Positions 51,405-61,791 of a stretch of 64,000 nt of DNA are shown piece after piece. Below the pieces are notes generated by a model. That model did not search any database and was not told the origin of the DNA. It saw only the letters and a list, made by a program, of their open reading frames with translations. How positions within the stretch are numbered: position 1 is the first letter of the stretch; each line of letters starts with the position of its first letter. The translations under genes and the position numbers were made by a program. Source of the DNA: Trichosphaerium sp. ATCC 40318. Its lineage: Eukaryota; Protista; Tubulinea. Location of the stretch: assembly GCA_038496445.1 (NCBI GenBank), contig JALMLS010000579.1:186001-250000 (forward strand), in the 5' to 3' direction.

Positions 51405-52524
51405 CTAGGTTCGAGGCGGAATAATACCTTGAAGGGCAATAATGTAGTTTACACCAAGAGAAGGTTGATGGTTCGCAAAAGACTGACCGACTCCTGCAGA
51501 TGTTGTGTCTCCAGTGACATCAACAGTTGCTTCAACAGTTGTTGTTGCACTTAAAGTACCTTAAAGAAACAATAAGAGCCCTATAAGTTCCAACTTTGCT
51601 GTTTGGAATGAACTGAAACACACCTTTGTCAACTGTCAACCCTGATGTATCCACTCCAAGAGAAAGGTTCACATTACCCGATGTACTTCCTATCACTCTA
51701 TTCTGCTCCACTTTTATTGGACAACGTGCATCCAACGATTGACAAGTGTCTACAACACGCAACAAGTTAAATAGACTACCAGATGTACAAGGCGGTGCTT
51801 CTCCTGGAAGCCCTCTTGAGAGTGTGACATCAGCTGTGACATCTAAATTCAGGTCGACATTCGGATCACCAGTGATTGAAGCGCTTCCTGATATTGTAGG
51901 TTGACCTTCAATGGTTGTCGTAGATGTAGTGAAATCGACTGTTTGGTCCATTAATGATACTGAGTGTGCATGAGAAGGCATATTCGCCTCTGCTAGAGTT
52001 GTAGTTTCTGCTCCAAACCGTTGTCCTTGTCTCACGGTTTGTAAAGCTGATCTTATTAGGTATTATTTTGACTGTACAACCATATGTACCGTTTCCCTGC
52101 CCAGAATGTACAGGAACTCTTCCGCGAAGATCGGGTAGCCTACTTTAAATATTAACATCCCTATTCCACAGGTATGCTGGTTGGCAGGTAGTCACAATAA
52201 GCGAACGTACGCAAAAGTACTTCTACCATCTCCGCCATATGTGGTCCCAATTAAACTGAACAACACCATATTACCACTAATGCCTTTAAGCAATAAGTGA
52301 AAATAAGAATCTCAATACTTACTTTGTATCTGACCGTCGCAAAACGCCCAACCTCGCGGAGCAAAAGTGCCCGCAAATATTCTTATCTCTCCAATAAATG
52401 GCTCCGATGCGTATGAAACAATTAACAAGCTCAATAATACCGATGTAATCTTGTTTTTAAAACATAAGCTTTGCACATGTGATATCATAAAAATTAGACT
52501 ACATACTGCGATGAGATGGCACAT
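51405..52524 (-). CDS. Secreted phage tail-collar domain protein (microcystin-dependent protein MdpB-like)
   Basis: Spliced: MCHLIAITSVLLSLLIVSYA|SEPFIGEIRIFAGTFAPRGWAFCDGQ..LFSLIGTTYGGDGRSTFALPDLRGRVPVHSGQG..GAETTTLAEANMPSHAH...GQSFANHQPSLGVNYIIALQGIIPPRT*. Confidence 0.88.
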
Positions 52525-52991: not shown

Positions 52992-55900
52992 TTAAAGAGG
53001 AACTATAGTACACTTTAAACCATCATTCCATTGCCTGTATTCTGGTGTGTAATATAAAAATGCACACGATGAAGGACCTGTATAAGTACCAGGAACAGCA
53101 GCCTAAAAATCATCGTAAATAAAGCACCAGCTTAAAAGAATCTTGGTCGTGCCTTAACATCAATTTGAATTGTTGATTTTTGTTTTGGATCCATACCACG
53201 CCAATACAGTACAACTTTTCTACCGATCACTTCATAGAAATCGATAGCTTCACTCTTGACAAGCTCCTATCAAGTACATCAGTAAAAATCACGTGATTTT
53301 TTGGTAACAATAAGGTACCTTTAATTTCTCATGACGAGGCTCAAGGCCTCCTGGAAGTCCTATGATTGCGATGACCATAGGCAAGTCAGTATCTTTTTTA
53401 TTTTCAATATCGACTTGGATTTCACCAGTCTCTCCTTCCTTGATTGACTCTGGCTTCATTTGAGTTGCAATTGATATTGAGCATTCATCAGAAGAAGGTC
53501 CTTTCAATGTAAAATAATTGATATTCACATTGTATGGTATGTTTCCTGATCCCTTGGCCATGGTTATTTTGAATTCATGTTTACCAGGCTTGAGTTTTTG
53601 TGCAGCTTCTTTGAAATCTACGAACCAGTTAACAATAGGTTGTTAAACATCTCAACAATTGTCTCGTACCAAGATTTATAGGTTCTACGCTTGTAGCGGA
53701 TATTGTCTTAGTGATCTTTAAGCCACCAATAGTCTAAAGAGCCCAGGTAAGGTTATAGTTTAATCAGAAACAGCAAAAACAGTAATTGAGAGTTTTTCAG
53801 TGTAAAGTCGTACAGCAACTAGGTCAATATCCCCGTTTTCTTTTGGACTCTTATTCATTTGACCATATGTGAATACAGCACGCAGAGCTTGCACAGTTGA
53901 TTGTGAAGTACTCCAAGATCCATTTGATACTTGAGATTGAAGGTACTTCAATCCTGCTTGGATGTTCGATGAGAACTTGTTTGGATCATCACGCAACCAT
54001 CCAGTAACTGCAAGACCAGTTGTTTCAACCAATAGAGATTGTCCATATGATCTTACAATAGATGAGGTGCCTCCCTCTACCTTACCATCTAAATATCAGG
54101 TCAGGCAATGACAAGGTCTTTTGAGAAGGGACTGAGCTTACCTTTCGCTTGTTTTGAAGCTAGATATTCACCAGCTTGACGTGCGGCTTTTTTGTTCTTG
54201 GCGTTGTTGAACGCCATGTACATACATGCCCACACGTATGAGTTTTTGTTATCAGGCAGCGCTTTACCTTGGATATCAAGTTCCTTTGTAACATCATTAG
54301 CAGCTCCAAGTTCGGTGAGGCCATAAAGACAATATGCTGTAAACAAATGTAAGAAAAGTACTTTTTAATGGTGGATTGTACATACCGTTGTTGACGTCTT
54401 TTGGAGGCGAAGAGAAAGCATAACGACCGCGGCCAAGGTGGAATCCTCCTTTACCATCTTTACGTGATAAAAGCCAACTCTTGGCTCGATTAACAAGTGA
54501 CTTGTCAACTATGAAACAAAGTTAATGTTTTAGCTTTTACAGCTTCTTAGCACGTACCTTCCATTGATTTACCAAGATCTTTGAGCATCATTAATCCGTA
54601 TGAAGTCAATGATTCATGAGCTGGTGATCCGCCATACCTTAACACAAAACATGAGCAACAAGGTAATAGGTTACAGCACAGAATGTTTTTTGGAGATGGT
54701 GTTACTTGCCATTCGAATCCTGATGTTATCTTCGTTTCGTATCCAACAATTTTCTTATATCCGACCATCATTTTACTGTGCATGTCTGAAATCAATGATG
54801 GATCTACTCCAATTGTACTGTCATTGAAGAACATTCCAGCCATAGCCATTGGATATAGAGTTGACCCAACTTGTTCAAAACATCCACAAGGTGTACGGAT
54901 CATACCCTTTAGAGCTTTTTGGAATTTGGCTGCATTAGTTGGTAGGATAGACACTTCAATATTTAGCGTGTTTGGAACTAAACATAACGGACGTTAGATT
55001 CATCGTTTCGAAACACGTGAAGAGTAAAGTGAAACCTCTGAAATTACAACTTACCATAATCAGGCAATACGTTGAAAGTATGCTTTTCTGTTTTACTCTT
55101 ACTGATTGTACCACTTGCAGATGCTTCCAATGGAAAGCCCTAGATATATTTTTAAGATACTCGTAACACTCAATAATTTATAAATTGGTACCTTTGGTTG
55201 AATACGAACACTGCGAACAATATTATCTTCACGCTCACTTGAAGTGCCGACAACCTTTAGCTCACTTGTGAGTGGTACGTTTTGTATATCGATTGGAATG
55301 ACAGCGCGTTCTACAAACATGTTAGGTTCCTGTTTATTAGCAGTAGAGGATCAAATGAGGTTGGAACATACGTCTTTGTTCTGGCCCAAGAGTGACACCT
55401 TTTCCTTTGTTTGTTTCTGGATCCAAAAGAAAACCGTCTCCGCCCCACACTTCGAATCCAACATCTGTGATTTTATGTCCAGTGTTGTTGACCATGAGTA
55501 CAGGTAATTGCACTTTATCACCGCAAGACACTTCGATAGGTACTTTAAGATCAACAGAGAAAGGTTCCTTGCAAGGAACAAGCCTATTCGAACATTAGGT
55601 AAACAAAACTATTGTATGAACAAAAAAAAAACAATAACGTACAACTCATTGTAGCCTAGCAGATGCGCGTGATGTATAGAATCGCACATAACATTGAAGC
55701 TTGTGATACTATCGTTCATATCAAACTCAAAAGAGGCGAAACCTGTACATGTTCAGTGAGTAAAGGAAGAACTTTACAAGAAAGAAAAAAAAGGTACATA
55801 CCAAACTTATCAGTGACTAATCCTGCATTCCAGTACAAAGTCTCCTTGAACTCAGTTCTACAAAGGAAGAAAAGTAAACATACAATACATAAAAAAGGTA

Positions 55901-58900
55901 AGTAATTGGTACCTATCACCATCTACAGTAGGAGGTCTGAAAGTGAAATCAGAAAAGTCAGTTGAACTCAGGAAGGTTAAAAAAAAATTATACGTACGCG
56001 GTGAATGAGAATACTCTTAGCATCTTAGGTACAATTTTTACTTTTTTAGAGTTAAACTGAGAGCGACTGGATGGCATAAATCTACTTTTCATCATTTTAG
56101 GAGACTCTGACCGACTTGATATCTTTGAAACCTTCTTCTTCGGTGCTGCTTCTCTTTTTTTAGACATAACTTTCTCCTCTTTTGCTCTAGCTGAAGGCTG
56201 TGCTCTCTTAGATTTTGATTCCTTTGGTTTACGAGCTACTGGCATAGCCTTCTTCTTAGACTTAAATGCTGGCTTTGATTCTTTCTTTTTTGTCGGCCTT
56301 GGAGCAGATTCCACTGATCTTATTGACTCACTCTCAAGCATTATGCTGTTTTCTGGAATGGCACTATACTGTACTTCGCTACTGCAGTAGTCTAATTCTT
56401 CCAGTAAATAATCCTATAAAAACAAGAAAAGTTACATTAACATTAACCGGGTTGTCGACATACAGCTGGTATTGGTCTCTCTAGTTTCTGCAACGAATAA
56501 AACGTCAGTAACAGCATGAAAAAAAAGGTCTCATGGGGTTTGTTTGACTTACGCTAGCAATGTTCAATCCAGGCGCACAAGCTACAACTTGTTGTGCTTT
56601 AGATCCATGTTCTTTCATAAAAGCTTCAAGATCCACTTTGTTTTTTACAAAGACAAGTTTTCTCCAGCCCTAAGTTCTCATGTTATTATTTTTTTTGGAA
56701 AGAAACTACATGATGTTTGCGTACTTGAGTGCCGAGTAGTAAATCAATTGCAGTGTTTCCTTTTTCATCATGTTTAAGGTACACGTGGGCATCGAATAGT
56801 TCTTTGACTTCACCTTCCAAGTAAGCCATTTCTTGCAATCTAGGTGCCTTTTTTCGATTCTAAGGAAAACATTGGTCTTATAGTTCTTAATTCTCAATCC
56901 GAGCTATTGGGAATATTAGCTAATAAACGTACTTCTACCATCTCTAATACTGAGTTGTCAACAACTGTAGTTCCAATAGTTGCATCTCTATATTTGTACA
57001 CGTTAATCTTGGCAATGAGAAAACAAATAACGAAAATAACATACGCAAGAGGTTGTCCGTTTTCTCCTGTTGCATACAACAGAACACGAACTTTGTTCCT
57101 TGGTGCATATACACCTCTTTCAGGCATTATCGAAACATTTACATGTTTGGATGGTTGTCTAGAACACGTGATTAGAAAAGAAACTAAATGGCATCAACAA
57201 ACCTGTATACAAGTCTTTCAGCAACAGCAAGTCCAGTCCTCATCTCGTAAGCAGTGGCTCTTAGTACGCCCGCCGTTGATGTAGGAGGTGTGAAGAAAAG
57301 CTTAGCTGCCTTCTTGCCTGTGATATCAACTTTGACAGATAGAATCTCAGTGTCACGTTTAAACAAACCAACATAATAAGCCCCAGGTCCTAGACAAGCT
57401 TTAGTAAAACTAGAAATTAGCTAACACTCAAACTCACGTGTTGTCTGAAGTGTCATCTCGATAGATGTATCAGTAGTAACAAAAGCGCCTTTCTTTGTGT
57501 TCAATACAGCTCCTGAAGATTCGAACAAGCTCTACAATAAATTAGACACGTGTTTGAATTGGGTTGACAATCGTACTGGTTCAAGATAGATAAGTTGATC
57601 AACACCAGCTGGTTTCAAAATACGTAAAGCATATTTTGATCCTTTTTTGGGTTTAAATGTTAGTTTACCACGTCCTTCATGTTCAGTCTTGAAAGCAGTA
57701 ACTACTTTACTATAAAACAAGTTAGGTGGTTTACTCTACTAACAAAATAAACACGTGCCCGCTTCTTGCTCTCACTAACTCTCCTTCAATATCTCCTGGA
57801 TCTCCAGAAGGCGTAAAGCATTGCAAGTATAACCCACATTGCAATCCATGGATAAGAGAACCTGACTCTGGATACATACGAATATCGAGTTTCTAAAACA
57901 ACGTTTAGAAAAATCACTTCGATTGACACTCCATACCTTTAGAAGAATAGGAATAGTTTTAGCAGTAGACTCTACACTACCTCCATCTTCAACAATGAAC
58001 GTTAAACTGCCTTCACCAACCTCAATCTTGGCAGGAAGGTCAAAACTAACCATACAGTTTCCATCAGCGCCAACAGTTGTGTCACCTCTATCATCATAGT
58101 CAGATATATCGTTGCTGTGAGATCTAATACCTGTAAACTTCAGAGCCATCCACACGTGCAACTGCATTCACTTTTGCACCAACTGGAATGCCACCCTCAA
58201 CACGTGAAACCTGGAAAGAAGGTTAGCTTGAAGATAAAAGTAGTTGAGACATACAGTGAGTGAAGCTGAAGCTTTGTCTCCTGGTCCAAGTCCTTTACGT
58301 AAGAATTCAGCTTGTAAGTTAAGCTTTGGTGGTTGGTATTCTCTTATATCAAATTTTCTTTCTTGGGTTACAAGCACGCAGTCATTTGCCCTAAAGAACG
58401 TGTTAAGTTGCTTTTTCGAAAGACAAATCAACGCACATTCCAGCATCAAACTGTATAGTATACTCTCCGCCGGCCTTTCCTTTTGGAATCTTCCACTGAT
58501 GAGCAATGCAAGTAACGCCTTTGTTCTGGTTTTCGCCCTTGAGAGTAAATTCGTTGGAGCCTGTTCGAAAGAGCAAACATAGTGAGTATGATGTCAACTA
58601 TTTTAGACAAAAAACAAACGTTACCTGAAGGTCCTGTAATCTTTCCTTTAATCTGAGAAAGGTTCATTACATCTCCTCTGAGGGGTTCAAACGTATGAGC
58701 ATCAAGGTATGTGACTGTCAACAGATAATTAGTCACAAAACTTGATTGGTTTCAAGCATATTTAAGACATTACCTCTGATCCAAACTGTTTCCTCTGGTT
58801 TGTACAAAGGTTTATCTGTAGATACGTATCCAATGTATCTCTTCTTAGCATCTATGTTATAACTGGAAAATGAAGGAGTGACACCAAGAGTAAGAGAAGG

Positions 58901-60541
58901 TAGTGAAGTTTCAGCTATTGAAAAAACATTATTAATTTAAAGTTTTGTACGAATACAAAACAACTTCAGCTTACCTTCAGCATACTTAAACGGTGTGTAA
59001 ATACCACCTGTTGTATTGATGGTAACAACAGCATAGTGGTCAAAACCGATAGTTGGATAAACTGCCTTCTTAGGCAAAACAAAGTTGCTTGTTACAACCT
59101 TGACACCATTTTTGGTCCAGAACAATTTGTTGCCATAGATTCCGCAACCAATCACGTCACCCACGCCAAATGTATTCTTTAGAGATTGAGGTTTCTGCTC
59201 TCCATTGTAAAAGACTAAACCGAAGAATCAATTGAAATACGACTCAAAGGAACGGAAAAGAAGAAGAAAAGAAATCGATCGGAACGTACCATCTCCATCG
59301 TCGCTGTGGTATCCATAACTACCTTTCACCCATCCAGGGAATTTAGTGTCTGTAGGGAATGACTGTAAAGCATATCCAACACCAACAACACTATAAAAAA
59401 GTGAGATAATAGACTAGAGAAAATCCATAAAAACTATACCCAGAATCTCCTACACGTTTCATACTGACAATGGACACTTCGAAGTACTTCAACGAGTTTA
59501 GGAACTGTACTGCGTGTTCACCTCCGCGACCTGTCTTAGTAGGTCTAGAGCGTATAATAGATCCATTGACTATTGCACTATCACTATGACGTGTTCCTAA
59601 GCACACGGTAAACAAAAAAAAAAAGCCAAAGAAAAGTTAAAAAAAACTCACGTTCATTGTAAATCAGAGGTATCTGAAGCGTCCCTGTTGTCATGGTGAG
59701 TACAGCTTTGTTGTCAACACCAATACAAGGGAACAACTGAGGTCTAACAGATGGAGGTACTTTCTCAGGTGATTTACCAACACGTTCTCCGTTTAATGTC
59801 CTTTTAAACGCTTAGAAGACCTTCAGACGTTGAAATAGTGACTGTACCAGAACACAGTGCCATCTTTCTCTATACCACAGCCTACAACTGAACCCTCACC
59901 GTACTTTGTAGATAAATCAGAAGCAATGTCATTAAAATAGCTCTTTCCACTTTCACCATGGTAACCCCATGAACTAATGGCGTATAAATGTATGCTTGTC
60001 AAAAGATATTGTTTTTGAACGGTTTACTCAAATATAACGTTAAAACGCACTTTTTGGCCCAACCTGGGAAGTCATCAGTTAGCTCAATGTCCTTTGTAGC
60101 GTATCCAATGGCACAACCGCTATCTTATAGTCAAACAACTATTTTAGTCTAAAACTCGTATGTACCCTTCTCCTTTATCTCCTACGTGGAGTGACTTTAT
60201 GTTTACCTCATAATACGCGATATCCGCATTACAGAGTTGGAATACCTTTATTTATCAACAAAACTACCTTAAAACACTTCTAAAGTTGCTTACTTGCTCA
60301 GTTCCAGCTTCTTTAACATTTACAGATAGTTCAACGGCTTTTCCGCTTTCAAGCTTTTTAACAGAGTACGCCGAGCTTTGACGTGTACCCATCGCTATTA
60401 GTAGCTTCTTTTTATGGCTGGTTTTGTAAAACCACTTTGGAACCGAAAACCAAAGACCTTCAGGCGGATTCACTAAACGTTACATTAGTACGCGGTTCTC
60501 GTCGAAGCCTTCTGTTAACCAACAGCTGACTGTTTTTTCAT
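52992..60541 (-). CDS. SPRY-SPRY-alpha-2-macroglobulin/thioester-containing protein (many exons)
   Basis: Two SPRY domains (YYEV..GCAIGY..FPGWAKNSWGYHGESG..VVGCGI; YFEV..GVGY..FPGWVKGSYGYHSDDG..FGVGDVIGCG..FWTKNG..YPTIG); then YVSTDKPLYKPEETV (MG domain), RTEFKETLYWNA, thioester TPCGCFEQ (54871-54894), VETTGLAV, SWSTSQSTVQAL, PMVIAIIGLPGGLEP. Confidence 0.9.
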
Positions 60542-60838
60542 GCGTCATTTTCTGGTTTACATTAGCTTGTCTGAAATTATATCACGTGCACAAAACAAAA
60601 ACCATTATTAAGAAAATGCTATTCGCTTACGTTTAATTACATTAGTGACTTGAGAGATAACTAGCTCGAGTTTGCTGTAAACTCTTGGCAGTGCCACTCT
60701 ACCGTGATAATAACACAAGAAAGATAAGACACTTTTTTTAAAAGGTTAAAACGCTTTACAGTGTTTGAAACATAGATTGCTACTATGAAAATCGGACAGT
60801 ATACTTCAACCAATCCAACAAAAAAAACGATGGGCAGT

Positions 60839-61791
60839 TTACTCAGGTTCTTCTTCATCTTTTTTTGATTGCCATAATGACATGCTGTCTCTTAGCAGTC
60901 CTAGAATCATAGTCGTTTCTTTATAGTCATCATCATTTAATTCGTCTAGGTAATCTATTGAACCATCAAAGGCCTTCTTGGCAATAACATAAGCCTCATC
61001 TAAATTATTTAAAATCTCACCTTGAAACACACAAAAGCTATAAGTGAGTTCAAGGAGTATATGATTACTTGGTCTCATGTTACTTCTAGCCATCTTGAGC
61101 GCTTGCTTGTAAACTTCAAGTGCATTGTTTGTAGCATATGTACGCTCATCACCAATACTAATTTCGGCAATATAACGAAGATGATCACCCTTCATTTTCA
61201 TGTAAACTACTTTTGACTCAATGCTAGTTGACTTGGGTATAAGCTCTGTTGTTAGAATGTCTACAACCTCGTTGCAAATGTCTTTGAGCTCTCCTTCAAT
61301 CAGTTCACGGTATGCGTTTATCTTAGCTATCTTATAAGCACTTCCATCACTAGAGAAGTAACAAACGGAGTGAGCAATAAGAAAAGAAGTATGTCAAGCT
61401 TGTAGAAAAGTGAAAACAAAAAAGTGTAAAGGAACGCACGTCTCCACTTCTTTTACTTGCATGGACGATACTTTATGCCATGATGAACGTCTTAGCCTAA
61501 CGGTGTATTTGTACGCAATCAAGAACATCGTACGCTCGTCTCTTGATAACTCTAAACCAGCCAAAACCACTTTTTTCATTGCTTCAAGCATCTCTGGGTA
61601 ACGTTCCGCCTATTTTTTGTTTGTTGACAACGTTTGTAATCGTTTTTTTGGATTGATGCTGTTTTTGCGCTCTCTACGCCAAAGGGGTACTAACAGAGCC
61701 ATATACAACGACAAATAATAAAAAGCTTAATTTGAGCGCGTACTTGTTCAGCTAGGTATGCCATATACACGTTTTCTTCCCTTGGATCCAT
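60839..61791 (-). CDS. Divergent 14-3-3 protein
   Basis: REENVYMAYLAEQAERYPEM, AYK..RRSSW, ELKDICNEV, KMKGDHLRYIAE, AKKAFDGSI, YKETTMILGLLRDSMSLW. Confidence 0.9.

Follow-up and report, generated by a model that had tools for sequence, protein, structure and literature searches.

Thioester macroglobulins (A2M, the TEPs and complement) are textbook extracellular or periplasmic proteins. In bacteria, E. coli YfhM (ECAM) and Salmonella A2M are monomeric thioester traps of about 1,650 residues with extra MG domains, a lipobox and a CLEQ thioester, and their anchoring by the N-terminus provides a precedent for an N-terminal tether point. A precedent for a cytosolic thioester protein without a signal peptide is a form of complement C3 whose translation is reported to begin at an alternative start codon (PMC9095555). 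Here we analysed a window of 64,000 nucleotides from the amoeba Trichosphaerium sp. ATCC 40318 (contig JALMLS010000579.1, positions 186,001 to 250,000; coordinates below are those of the window). An earlier note, made from its letters alone, had proposed that the minus-strand region 52992-60541 encodes a fusion of SPRY domains with a thioester macroglobulin. We found that this is an expressed and constrained amoeba gene, the predicted product of which carries a tandem pair of RanBP9/SPRYD3-type SPRY domains, a linker and a complete, monomer-sized A2M/TEP-like chain. The best reading of this architecture, which we hold at slightly less than even confidence, is an intracellular, bait-triggered covalent trap that would be docked via the SPRY pair.

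Structure and expression of the gene

Region 52992-60541 consists of many short minus-strand frames with stop-rich spacers of 40-80 nt between them. A single open reading frame (ORF) was rebuilt by hand and checked by script, with 40 exons and 39 introns of 43-80 nt; splice sites were set by the GT/AG consensus (mostly GTA.GT ... YAG), the reading frame and alignment to relatives. The ORF runs from an ATG at 60541 to a stop at 52992-52994, exactly the span given in the earlier note, and it likewise begins MKKQSAVVNPPEG, a predicted N-terminus that requires a 47-nt intron at 60473-60519. The whole coding region (52992-60541, minus strand, as are all features of the gene given below) predicts a protein of about 1,790 residues, about 196 kDa and pI about 9.1. 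Alternative donors for intron 16 let its length vary between 1,783 and 1,795 residues, and the best-scoring donor gives 1,790. An automatic splice model that maximised coding length produced wrong frames and retained intron sequence, and the hand model was used instead.

The two parts of the protein meet at intron 9 (58915-58974, GTAAGC...AATAG, 60 nt), read from the sequence, which connects the second SPRY domain (SPRY2) with the macroglobulin chain. Position 58975 is the last of the SPRY2 exon (GAAG, followed by the donor GTAAGC), the next exon starts at 58914 after ..TTCAATAG, and retention of the intron would lead to a stop 17 codons on. Exon 10 (58774-58914; Pfam MG2, E 2.4e-4) holds a 24-residue linker and the conserved MG1 start, RYIGYVSTDKPLYKPEE, which aligns with RY..STDKP.Y.PGE, the MG1 start in all relatives, where it follows a signal peptide or an initiator region. 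No in-frame ATG lies in the sequence between the SPRY2 exon and this motif, and so the macroglobulin chain requires coding sequence from an exon further upstream; the nearest SPRY exon lies at a distance of 60 nt. It is therefore very improbable that the model merges neighbouring SPRY and A2M genes that are transcribed separately. Such an artefact would agree with the interval 58912-59162 being unbridged by any RNA contig, but the two parts are flanked by consensus GTAAGC and YAG across just 60 nt, the first in-frame Met downstream of RY..STDKP would remove the conserved MG1 start, and intron size and density are equal in the SPRY and macroglobulin halves. The fusion is deduced from these features of the sequence, the short intron (60 nt) and the lack of an ATG that could serve the conserved MG1 start, and we consider it highly probable that both parts form a single gene.

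Spliced transcripts were sought among sequencing runs. No run was recorded as RNA, but the contigs of one, X1, contained 10% of the sampled words. Twelve X1 contigs aligned on 55000-60950 at 90-99% identity and skipped model introns with GT..AG ends, indicating that X1 is spliced RNA of a close relative; zero contigs of run X2 aligned to this stretch. Fifteen introns (2-8, 10, 11, 19-22, 27 and 28) were matched directly by X1 joints and three more by loose ends running into the letters of the next exon, both 24-nt microexons included. In total 18 of the 39 introns are confirmed, and they are spread over both parts of the gene. Both halves are thus expressed in the close relative. By the depth bins and the contig pieces listed, X1 leaves 58912-59162 uncovered and does not extend beyond about 60390. 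The earlier note's single continuous SPRY-SPRY-A2M gene, for which it had proposed an RNA check, is accordingly borne out as to the one frame and the confirmed introns on both sides, while the SPRY2/MG1 junction and the 5' end are not spanned by contigs.

The same contigs were used to compare coding changes. Forty base differences altered 36 codons, 30 synonymously and 6 non-synonymously (synonymous/non-synonymous, 13/4 for the SPRY domains and 17/2 for the macroglobulin chain). This excess of synonymous changes supports the frames and indicates purifying selection on both parts.

Domain layout, relatives and splicing details

The macroglobulin part has about 1,415 residues and aligns from MG1 to the end with relatives of about 1,400 residues. 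MG1 to the first half of MG6 (residues ~399-899, 56725-58843), ending in LLLGTQ, was assigned by end-to-end alignment with P0008, P0037 and P0010, and its introns 10, 11 and 18-22 were seen in contigs or loose ends. A bait-equivalent region follows by alignment position (residues ~900-1092, 55915-56669), including a Lys/Ser-rich low-complexity exon at 55998-56413. The second half of MG6 and MG7 (TEFKETLYW..., 55373-55914) were assigned by alignment and by a Pfam A2M match on exon 29 (E 1.2e-3), with introns 27 and 28 present in RNA contigs. The thioester domain (TED; residues ~1296-1590, 53835-54942) matched Pfam TED_complement with its N-terminal part on exon 32 and its C-terminal part on exon 36, and the thioester motif CGCFEQ (residues 1314-1319) was read directly at 54871-54888. 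The second CUB half and a C-terminal MG8/receptor-binding-like domain (52995-53834) were placed by alignment to the end of the relatives, the C-termini of which match A2M_recep or bMG10; exon 38 gave a weak Pfam bMG10 match.

The model scored 1,358 bits against a profile of relatives carrying Pfam MG2, A2M_BRD, A2M, TED_complement (E-values of 1e-24 to 3e-29 in the relatives) and A2M_recep. Together with the end-to-end alignment and PCGCFEQ at 54871-54891, this score upholds the earlier view of a complete macroglobulin chain with an intact thioester. The description 'complement-like' has to be given up: Pfam matched neither an anaphylatoxin nor a C345C domain on the window exon pieces or in the relatives, and the chain ends at MG8 in an A2M layout. 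The bait-equivalent segment comprises 192 residues with 16% Lys and 14% Ser (K+R 45, D+E 22, pI about 10) and matched no Pfam domain; relatives have a low-complexity stretch of 131-290 residues at the same position. Beyond the thioester Cys the family has only three semi-conserved Cys columns, two of them lost in the window protein, which makes folding without disulfides plausible.

The SPRY pair occupies the N-terminal side of the protein. SPRY1 (residues ~25-208, exons 2-6, 59653-60422) was recognised by Pfam SPRY (PF00622) on exon 5 at 23.6 bits (E 5.7e-5), with introns 2-5 in RNA contigs, and SPRY2 (residues ~209-374, exons 7-9, 58976-59652) on the exon-9 frame at 26.7 bits against a cut-off of 26.3 (E 6.4e-6), with a weak match on exon 8 and introns 6-8 in RNA contigs. 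An Atlas feature search with SPRY2 also returned SPRY clusters. SPRY1 and SPRY2 share 39% identity across 149 residues (E 8e-28), which marks them as a tandem duplication. The nearest solved chains to the SPRY2 exon were those of RanBP9, RanBP10, SPRYD3 and Vid30 (E 0.001-0.13), with no TRIM among them, and no Pfam match to PRY, RING or B-box was found on any exon piece. By these matches the SPRY units are of the RanBP9/RanBP10/SPRYD3/Vid30 kind and not TRIM-type PRY-SPRY, and the TRIM analogy that the earlier note had drawn for pathogen recognition is weak for this reason. RanBP9/RanBP10, SPRYD3 and Vid30 are cytosolic or nuclear proteins, and all of them except SPRYD3 act as scaffolds in the CTLH/GID ubiquitin ligase.

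To place the macroglobulin part, the thioester frame was searched against 1.8 billion representative proteins. This gave 928 matches, the best of them 50% identical over the thioester exon. Of the 150 top matches, 149 contain GCFEQ, and neither the protein of the window gene itself nor any close orthologue of it was found among the representatives. The closest full-length relatives among the matches listed were P0008 (571 bits, phmmer; 41% identical over about 1,210 columns) and P0037 (548 bits). P0008 lies on a 191-kb contig with a flagellin gene on one side and an alanine racemase gene on the other, and P0150 and many further matches are labelled Planctomycetota (Brocadiia, Phycisphaerales, Tepidisphaerales, Pirellulales). 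The GCFEQ family has many members with signal peptides in Planctomycetota and occurs also, as leaderless forms, in free-living protists; it was found in Anaeramoeba ignava, A. flamelloides, Gefionella, Cantina, Andalucia and Namystynia. NCBIfam has no name for the bacterial relatives. Its profile matched human A2M (2e-63), CD109 (2e-55), A2ML1 (9e-55), TEP1 (3e-46) and also C3, and E. coli YfhM at 2.6e-25 over only about 300 positions (the MG7-TED stretch). Being far closer to human A2M than to YfhM, the family is A2M/TEP-like in size and layout and not YfhM-like. Window exons aligned to P0008 as separate rows, intended for a window-biased profile, gave scattered fragments and were not used.

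The earlier note had not recognised the architecture, and no relative that we listed shares it. SPRY was absent from the 150 best representative matches (local phmmer), and PF00622 from two lists of the best 120 relatives each (a profile search and an Anaeramoeba protein search), all of which carried A2M-type Pfam families. No SPRY+A2M set occurred among the large Atlas clusters, and two metagenome locus scans, one with the SPRY2 exon and one with the TED exon, returned no matches, nor did the SPRY2 exon as a protein query. Overall, none of about 300 distinct relatives combined SPRY with A2M, in lists dominated by bacteria that do not prove absence elsewhere, and a literature search found nothing on SPRY-macroglobulin fusions or leaderless protist macroglobulins. 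A phylogeny was among the checks proposed in the earlier note; in our trees the window protein grouped with protist rows and three bacterial ones (support 91-94, which does not decide its place). The pairing varied with the method: FastTree placed it with Gefionella and others, and a mixture model, weakly, with a Planctomycetota row. The mixed protist/Planctomycetota group was recovered, a firm placement with either was not, and we make no claim on the number or direction of transfers.

Several observations on neighbouring sequences and rows were made in passing. An intron-containing phage tail-collar-like gene lies directly downstream (51405-52524, minus strand) and is a second bacterial-type gene beside the macroglobulin gene. 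P0116 and P0137 (1,788 and 1,763 aa) have a trypsin-inhibitor-like cysteine-rich (TIL) domain inserted after the TED and long N-terminal extensions. Conserved acidic, non-hydrophobic N-terminal extensions are present in P0144, P0108, P0047 and other long bacterial rows; that of P0144 matches the anti-sigma-type zf-HC2 zinc finger. If these rows are transmembrane anti-sigma-like proteins, their extensions would be another kind of N-terminal address module.

Some splicing details bear on the exact protein. The proposed exon 1 (60520-60541; MKKQSAV and a split codon) is followed by the intron 60473-60519, which has a TACTAAT branch-like site. At 60542-60548, an ATG at 60548 combined with the same intron region could yield a short upstream ORF or, via a GTTGGT donor at 60523, the start MTHEKTVSL..; this start and MKKQSAV are both non-hydrophobic. 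The intron at 54638-54709 is of the GC-AG type (TG before the donor GCAAGT, TTAAG before G at the acceptor) and is stop-free and in frame if retained; only its splicing restores the conserved GFEW-YGG, and retention loses 28 bits against the family profile. Intron 16 (57710-57758) may use a GC donor (GCACGT after GG) or either of two GTTAGT donors, which scored 1357.7, 1352.1 and 1343.3 bits, respectively, against the family profile in a place with no RNA coverage. Should GC donors be rare in the genome, one well-supported and one possible GC-AG intron within a single gene would be out of the ordinary. Both 24-nt microexons are required because the frame is otherwise lost: KLERPIPA (56464-56487) is entered by the RNA contig loose end at 56413, and PPTVDGD (55913-55936), which keeps the frame into TEFKETLYW, is resembled by the loose end at 55859.

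Predicted location and mode of action

The gene model contains neither a signal peptide nor a membrane segment. In the first 70 residues of the window protein the top 12-residue hydropathy was 0.58, versus 2.0-3.3 in 20 of 23 bacterial relatives, and no 19-residue stretch of the whole protein exceeded 1.06. The absence of a hydrophobic leader noted earlier thus stands for the model, the 5' end of which is outside RNA contig cover. An upstream 14-3-3 gene on the same strand (60839-61201 and beyond, stop at about 60839) leaves about 300 nt to the ATG of the fusion gene, and no credible upstream signal exon was found in this interval. Across the family, a hydrophobic leader was present in 20 of 23 bacterial rows versus none of eight protist-clade rows, two of which are N-terminally truncated; these eight are the tree-nearest rows of known or apparent eukaryotic origin.

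On this evidence it is improbable that the protein is secreted or reaches the phagosome lumen, whether by means of an overlooked upstream exon or by a non-classical pathway, and works as an ordinary protease inhibitor outside the cell or in that lumen. The nearest bacterial relatives are exported, the RNA contigs do not reach the 5' end, and a hydrophobic 65-residue ORF (MKKNLSKLPIVFFVGLV..., 60661-60858, starting at 60858) could in principle be spliced to exon 2. However, this ORF overlaps the last codons of the 14-3-3 gene, its use needs weak donors (GTCCGA, GTTTTA, GTGTTA) and introns of 244-370 nt versus 43-80 nt in this gene, and the six complete as well as the two truncated protist-clade relatives have no leaders. 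The ORF has probably arisen by chance, in 3' sequence that is rich in AT. If the protein nevertheless proves to be secreted, it is just an unusual domain fusion within a known inhibitor family.

The protist relatives add to the case for an intracellular site. P0010, P0017 and P0022 (Anaeramoeba, Gefionella) start with MGQKPT, MGQKHS and MGNEHS, myristoylation-like MGxxxS/T sequences at the position of the bacterial signal peptide. In P0050 (Anaeramoeba ignava, 1,935 aa) five ubiquitin repeats stand at the bait position, between LLLGTQGW and ETLYW, and in P0027 (Namystynia karyoxenos transcript, 2,216 aa) an Hsp70 domain does; the latter has a signal-like start, unlike the other protist members. 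These two sequences suggest baits made of whole cytosolic proteins. A trap that is normally extracellular probably works inside the cell here, and we infer that the window protein stays in the cytosol or nucleus.

A membrane-tethered version of the trap was weighed as well, in which translation would begin at Met35 (MGTRQSS, 60392-60372) and give an N-myristoylated protein with a truncated first SPRY. MGTRQSS fits MGxxxS as the Anaeramoeba and Gefionella starts do, and the end of the relative's contigs at about 60390 lies close by. Yet low-coverage contigs often miss 5' ends, and when SPRY1 is compared with SPRY2, residues 25-40 fall on the first strand region of the latter (TSH..LLIAMGTRQS vs TRH..AIVNGSIIRS), so that Met35 looks like an internal domain residue. 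We regard this start as quite improbable.

In the intracellular trap that we favour, an endopeptidase would cut the exposed Lys/Ser-rich segment of about 190 residues, the putative bait. Cleavage would rearrange the chain and expose the buried Cys-Gln thioester, which could then form a covalent link to an amine or hydroxyl group close by on the attacker. The SPRY pair would serve as an address or docking module that tethers the trap to a partner protein or passes the sprung complex to downstream handling. These steps are modelled on the established A2M mechanism, and the role of the SPRY pair on its position, because relatives carry a localising device at the same N-terminal place: a signal peptide in Planctomycetota, an anti-sigma-like module in some other bacteria and MGxxxS/T in Anaeramoeba and Gefionella.

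Alternatively, the SPRY pair could bind a foreign surface or protein and the thioester could tag that target for autophagy or degradation in an opsonin-like manner, as in C3 and TEP1. The intact thioester motif, the match of the family profile to C3 and TEP1 also, and the protein-binding nature of SPRY domains would all suit such a role, and mammalian cytosolic C3 is reported to detect cytoinvasive bacteria (PMC9095555). But the SPRY type is one known from scaffolds and not the PRY-SPRY of TRIM sensors, Pfam found no anaphylatoxin, C345C or convertase-like partner, and a long disordered segment occupies the A2M bait position. Recognition and tagging is therefore unlikely, being less supported than the trap because the SPRY domains are scaffold-like and the chain is laid out as in A2M rather than complement. 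The action on escaped bacteria, viruses or injected proteases that the earlier note had envisaged is pure inference.

Several points weigh against the intracellular trap itself. The Lys-rich segment has motifs of the PKKK type and might serve in nuclear localisation or nucleic-acid binding instead of as a bait, and no residue of the window protein could be assigned as the one that sets the reactivity of the thioester, a role that His has in C3. SPRY domains can be secreted too, as in the nematode SPRYSEC effectors. The upstream ATG at 60548 overlaps the proposed start codon at 60541, and the two gaps in X1 coverage fall on the SPRY2/MG1 intron and the 5' end.

On a wider scale, the window protein may be one member of a protist-wide system of leaderless thioester macroglobulins inside cells, shared with or acquired from Planctomycetota-like bacteria. 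Such a system would combine exchangeable baits (ubiquitin repeats, a Lys/Ser-rich disordered segment) with exchangeable N-terminal addresses (a myristoyl glycine, tandem SPRY), and would sense and covalently capture intruding proteases or deubiquitinases, as the counterpart of A2M and complement within the cell; we put this forward as a possible but rather doubtful generalisation. A leaderless, intron-rich amoeba form with a cytosolic-type docking module would move thioester chemistry into the cytoplasm and would offer a testable model for how single-celled phagotrophs detect the proteases and deubiquitinases of intracellular bacteria and viruses. The gene also bears on the origin of the animal A2M/complement scaffold.

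Comparison with known systems

For the SPRY side, RanBP9/RanBP10, SPRYD3 and yeast Vid30/Gid1 provide the nearest solved sequences to the SPRY2 exon, at low identity, and the window protein differs from RanBP9/RanBP10/Vid30 in having no LisH, CTLH or CRA domains. E. coli YfhM (ECAM) is a much weaker profile match, and the macroglobulin part of about 1,415 residues has no lipobox. Cytosolic C3 (PMC9095555) represents a minor form of an animal protein that is otherwise secreted, whereas the only predicted form of the window gene, which is not a C3 orthologue, is leaderless. The CAGE complex occurs in Planctomycetes with signal peptides and in eukaryotes without them; its distribution is alike, but it was rejected as a match, being a different protein of about 2,300 residues with no thioester (10.1101/2025.09.22.677704).

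The animal monomeric A2M/TEPs (A2ML1, CD109, insect TEP1) have a macroglobulin part of similar size, about 1,400 residues, and share the order of parts: an MG array, a bait-region position between the MG6 halves, CUB-TED-CUB, a C-terminal MG8 and a CxEQ thioester. Compared with them, the window protein has GCFEQ instead of GCGEQ, no signal peptide, a 375-residue N-terminal SPRY-SPRY module, a strongly basic, low-complexity putative bait and no sign of disulfide dependence.

The closest full-length relatives are the GCFEQ proteins of about 1,400 residues from Planctomycetota and other bacteria, named 'MG2 domain-containing / A-macroglobulin complement component' (P0008, P0037, P0150). They share the domain order and the motifs STDKP, LLLGTQGWR, ETLYWNA, GCFEQ and GLPGGLEPRH with the window protein, and differ in their signal peptides, ordinary bacterial neighbourhoods and lack of SPRY and introns; their bait regions are Gly/Ala/Pro-rich and near neutral, unlike the basic segment of the window protein. 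The protist members (Anaeramoeba 'macroglobulin / complement', Gefionella, Cantina, Andalucia) have no SPRY; their chains open with MG1, in three cases preceded by an MGxxxS/T start. Like the window protein, they are leaderless, keep an intact GCFEQ, carry basic or low-complexity bait regions and belong to the weakly supported mixed protist/Planctomycetota group.

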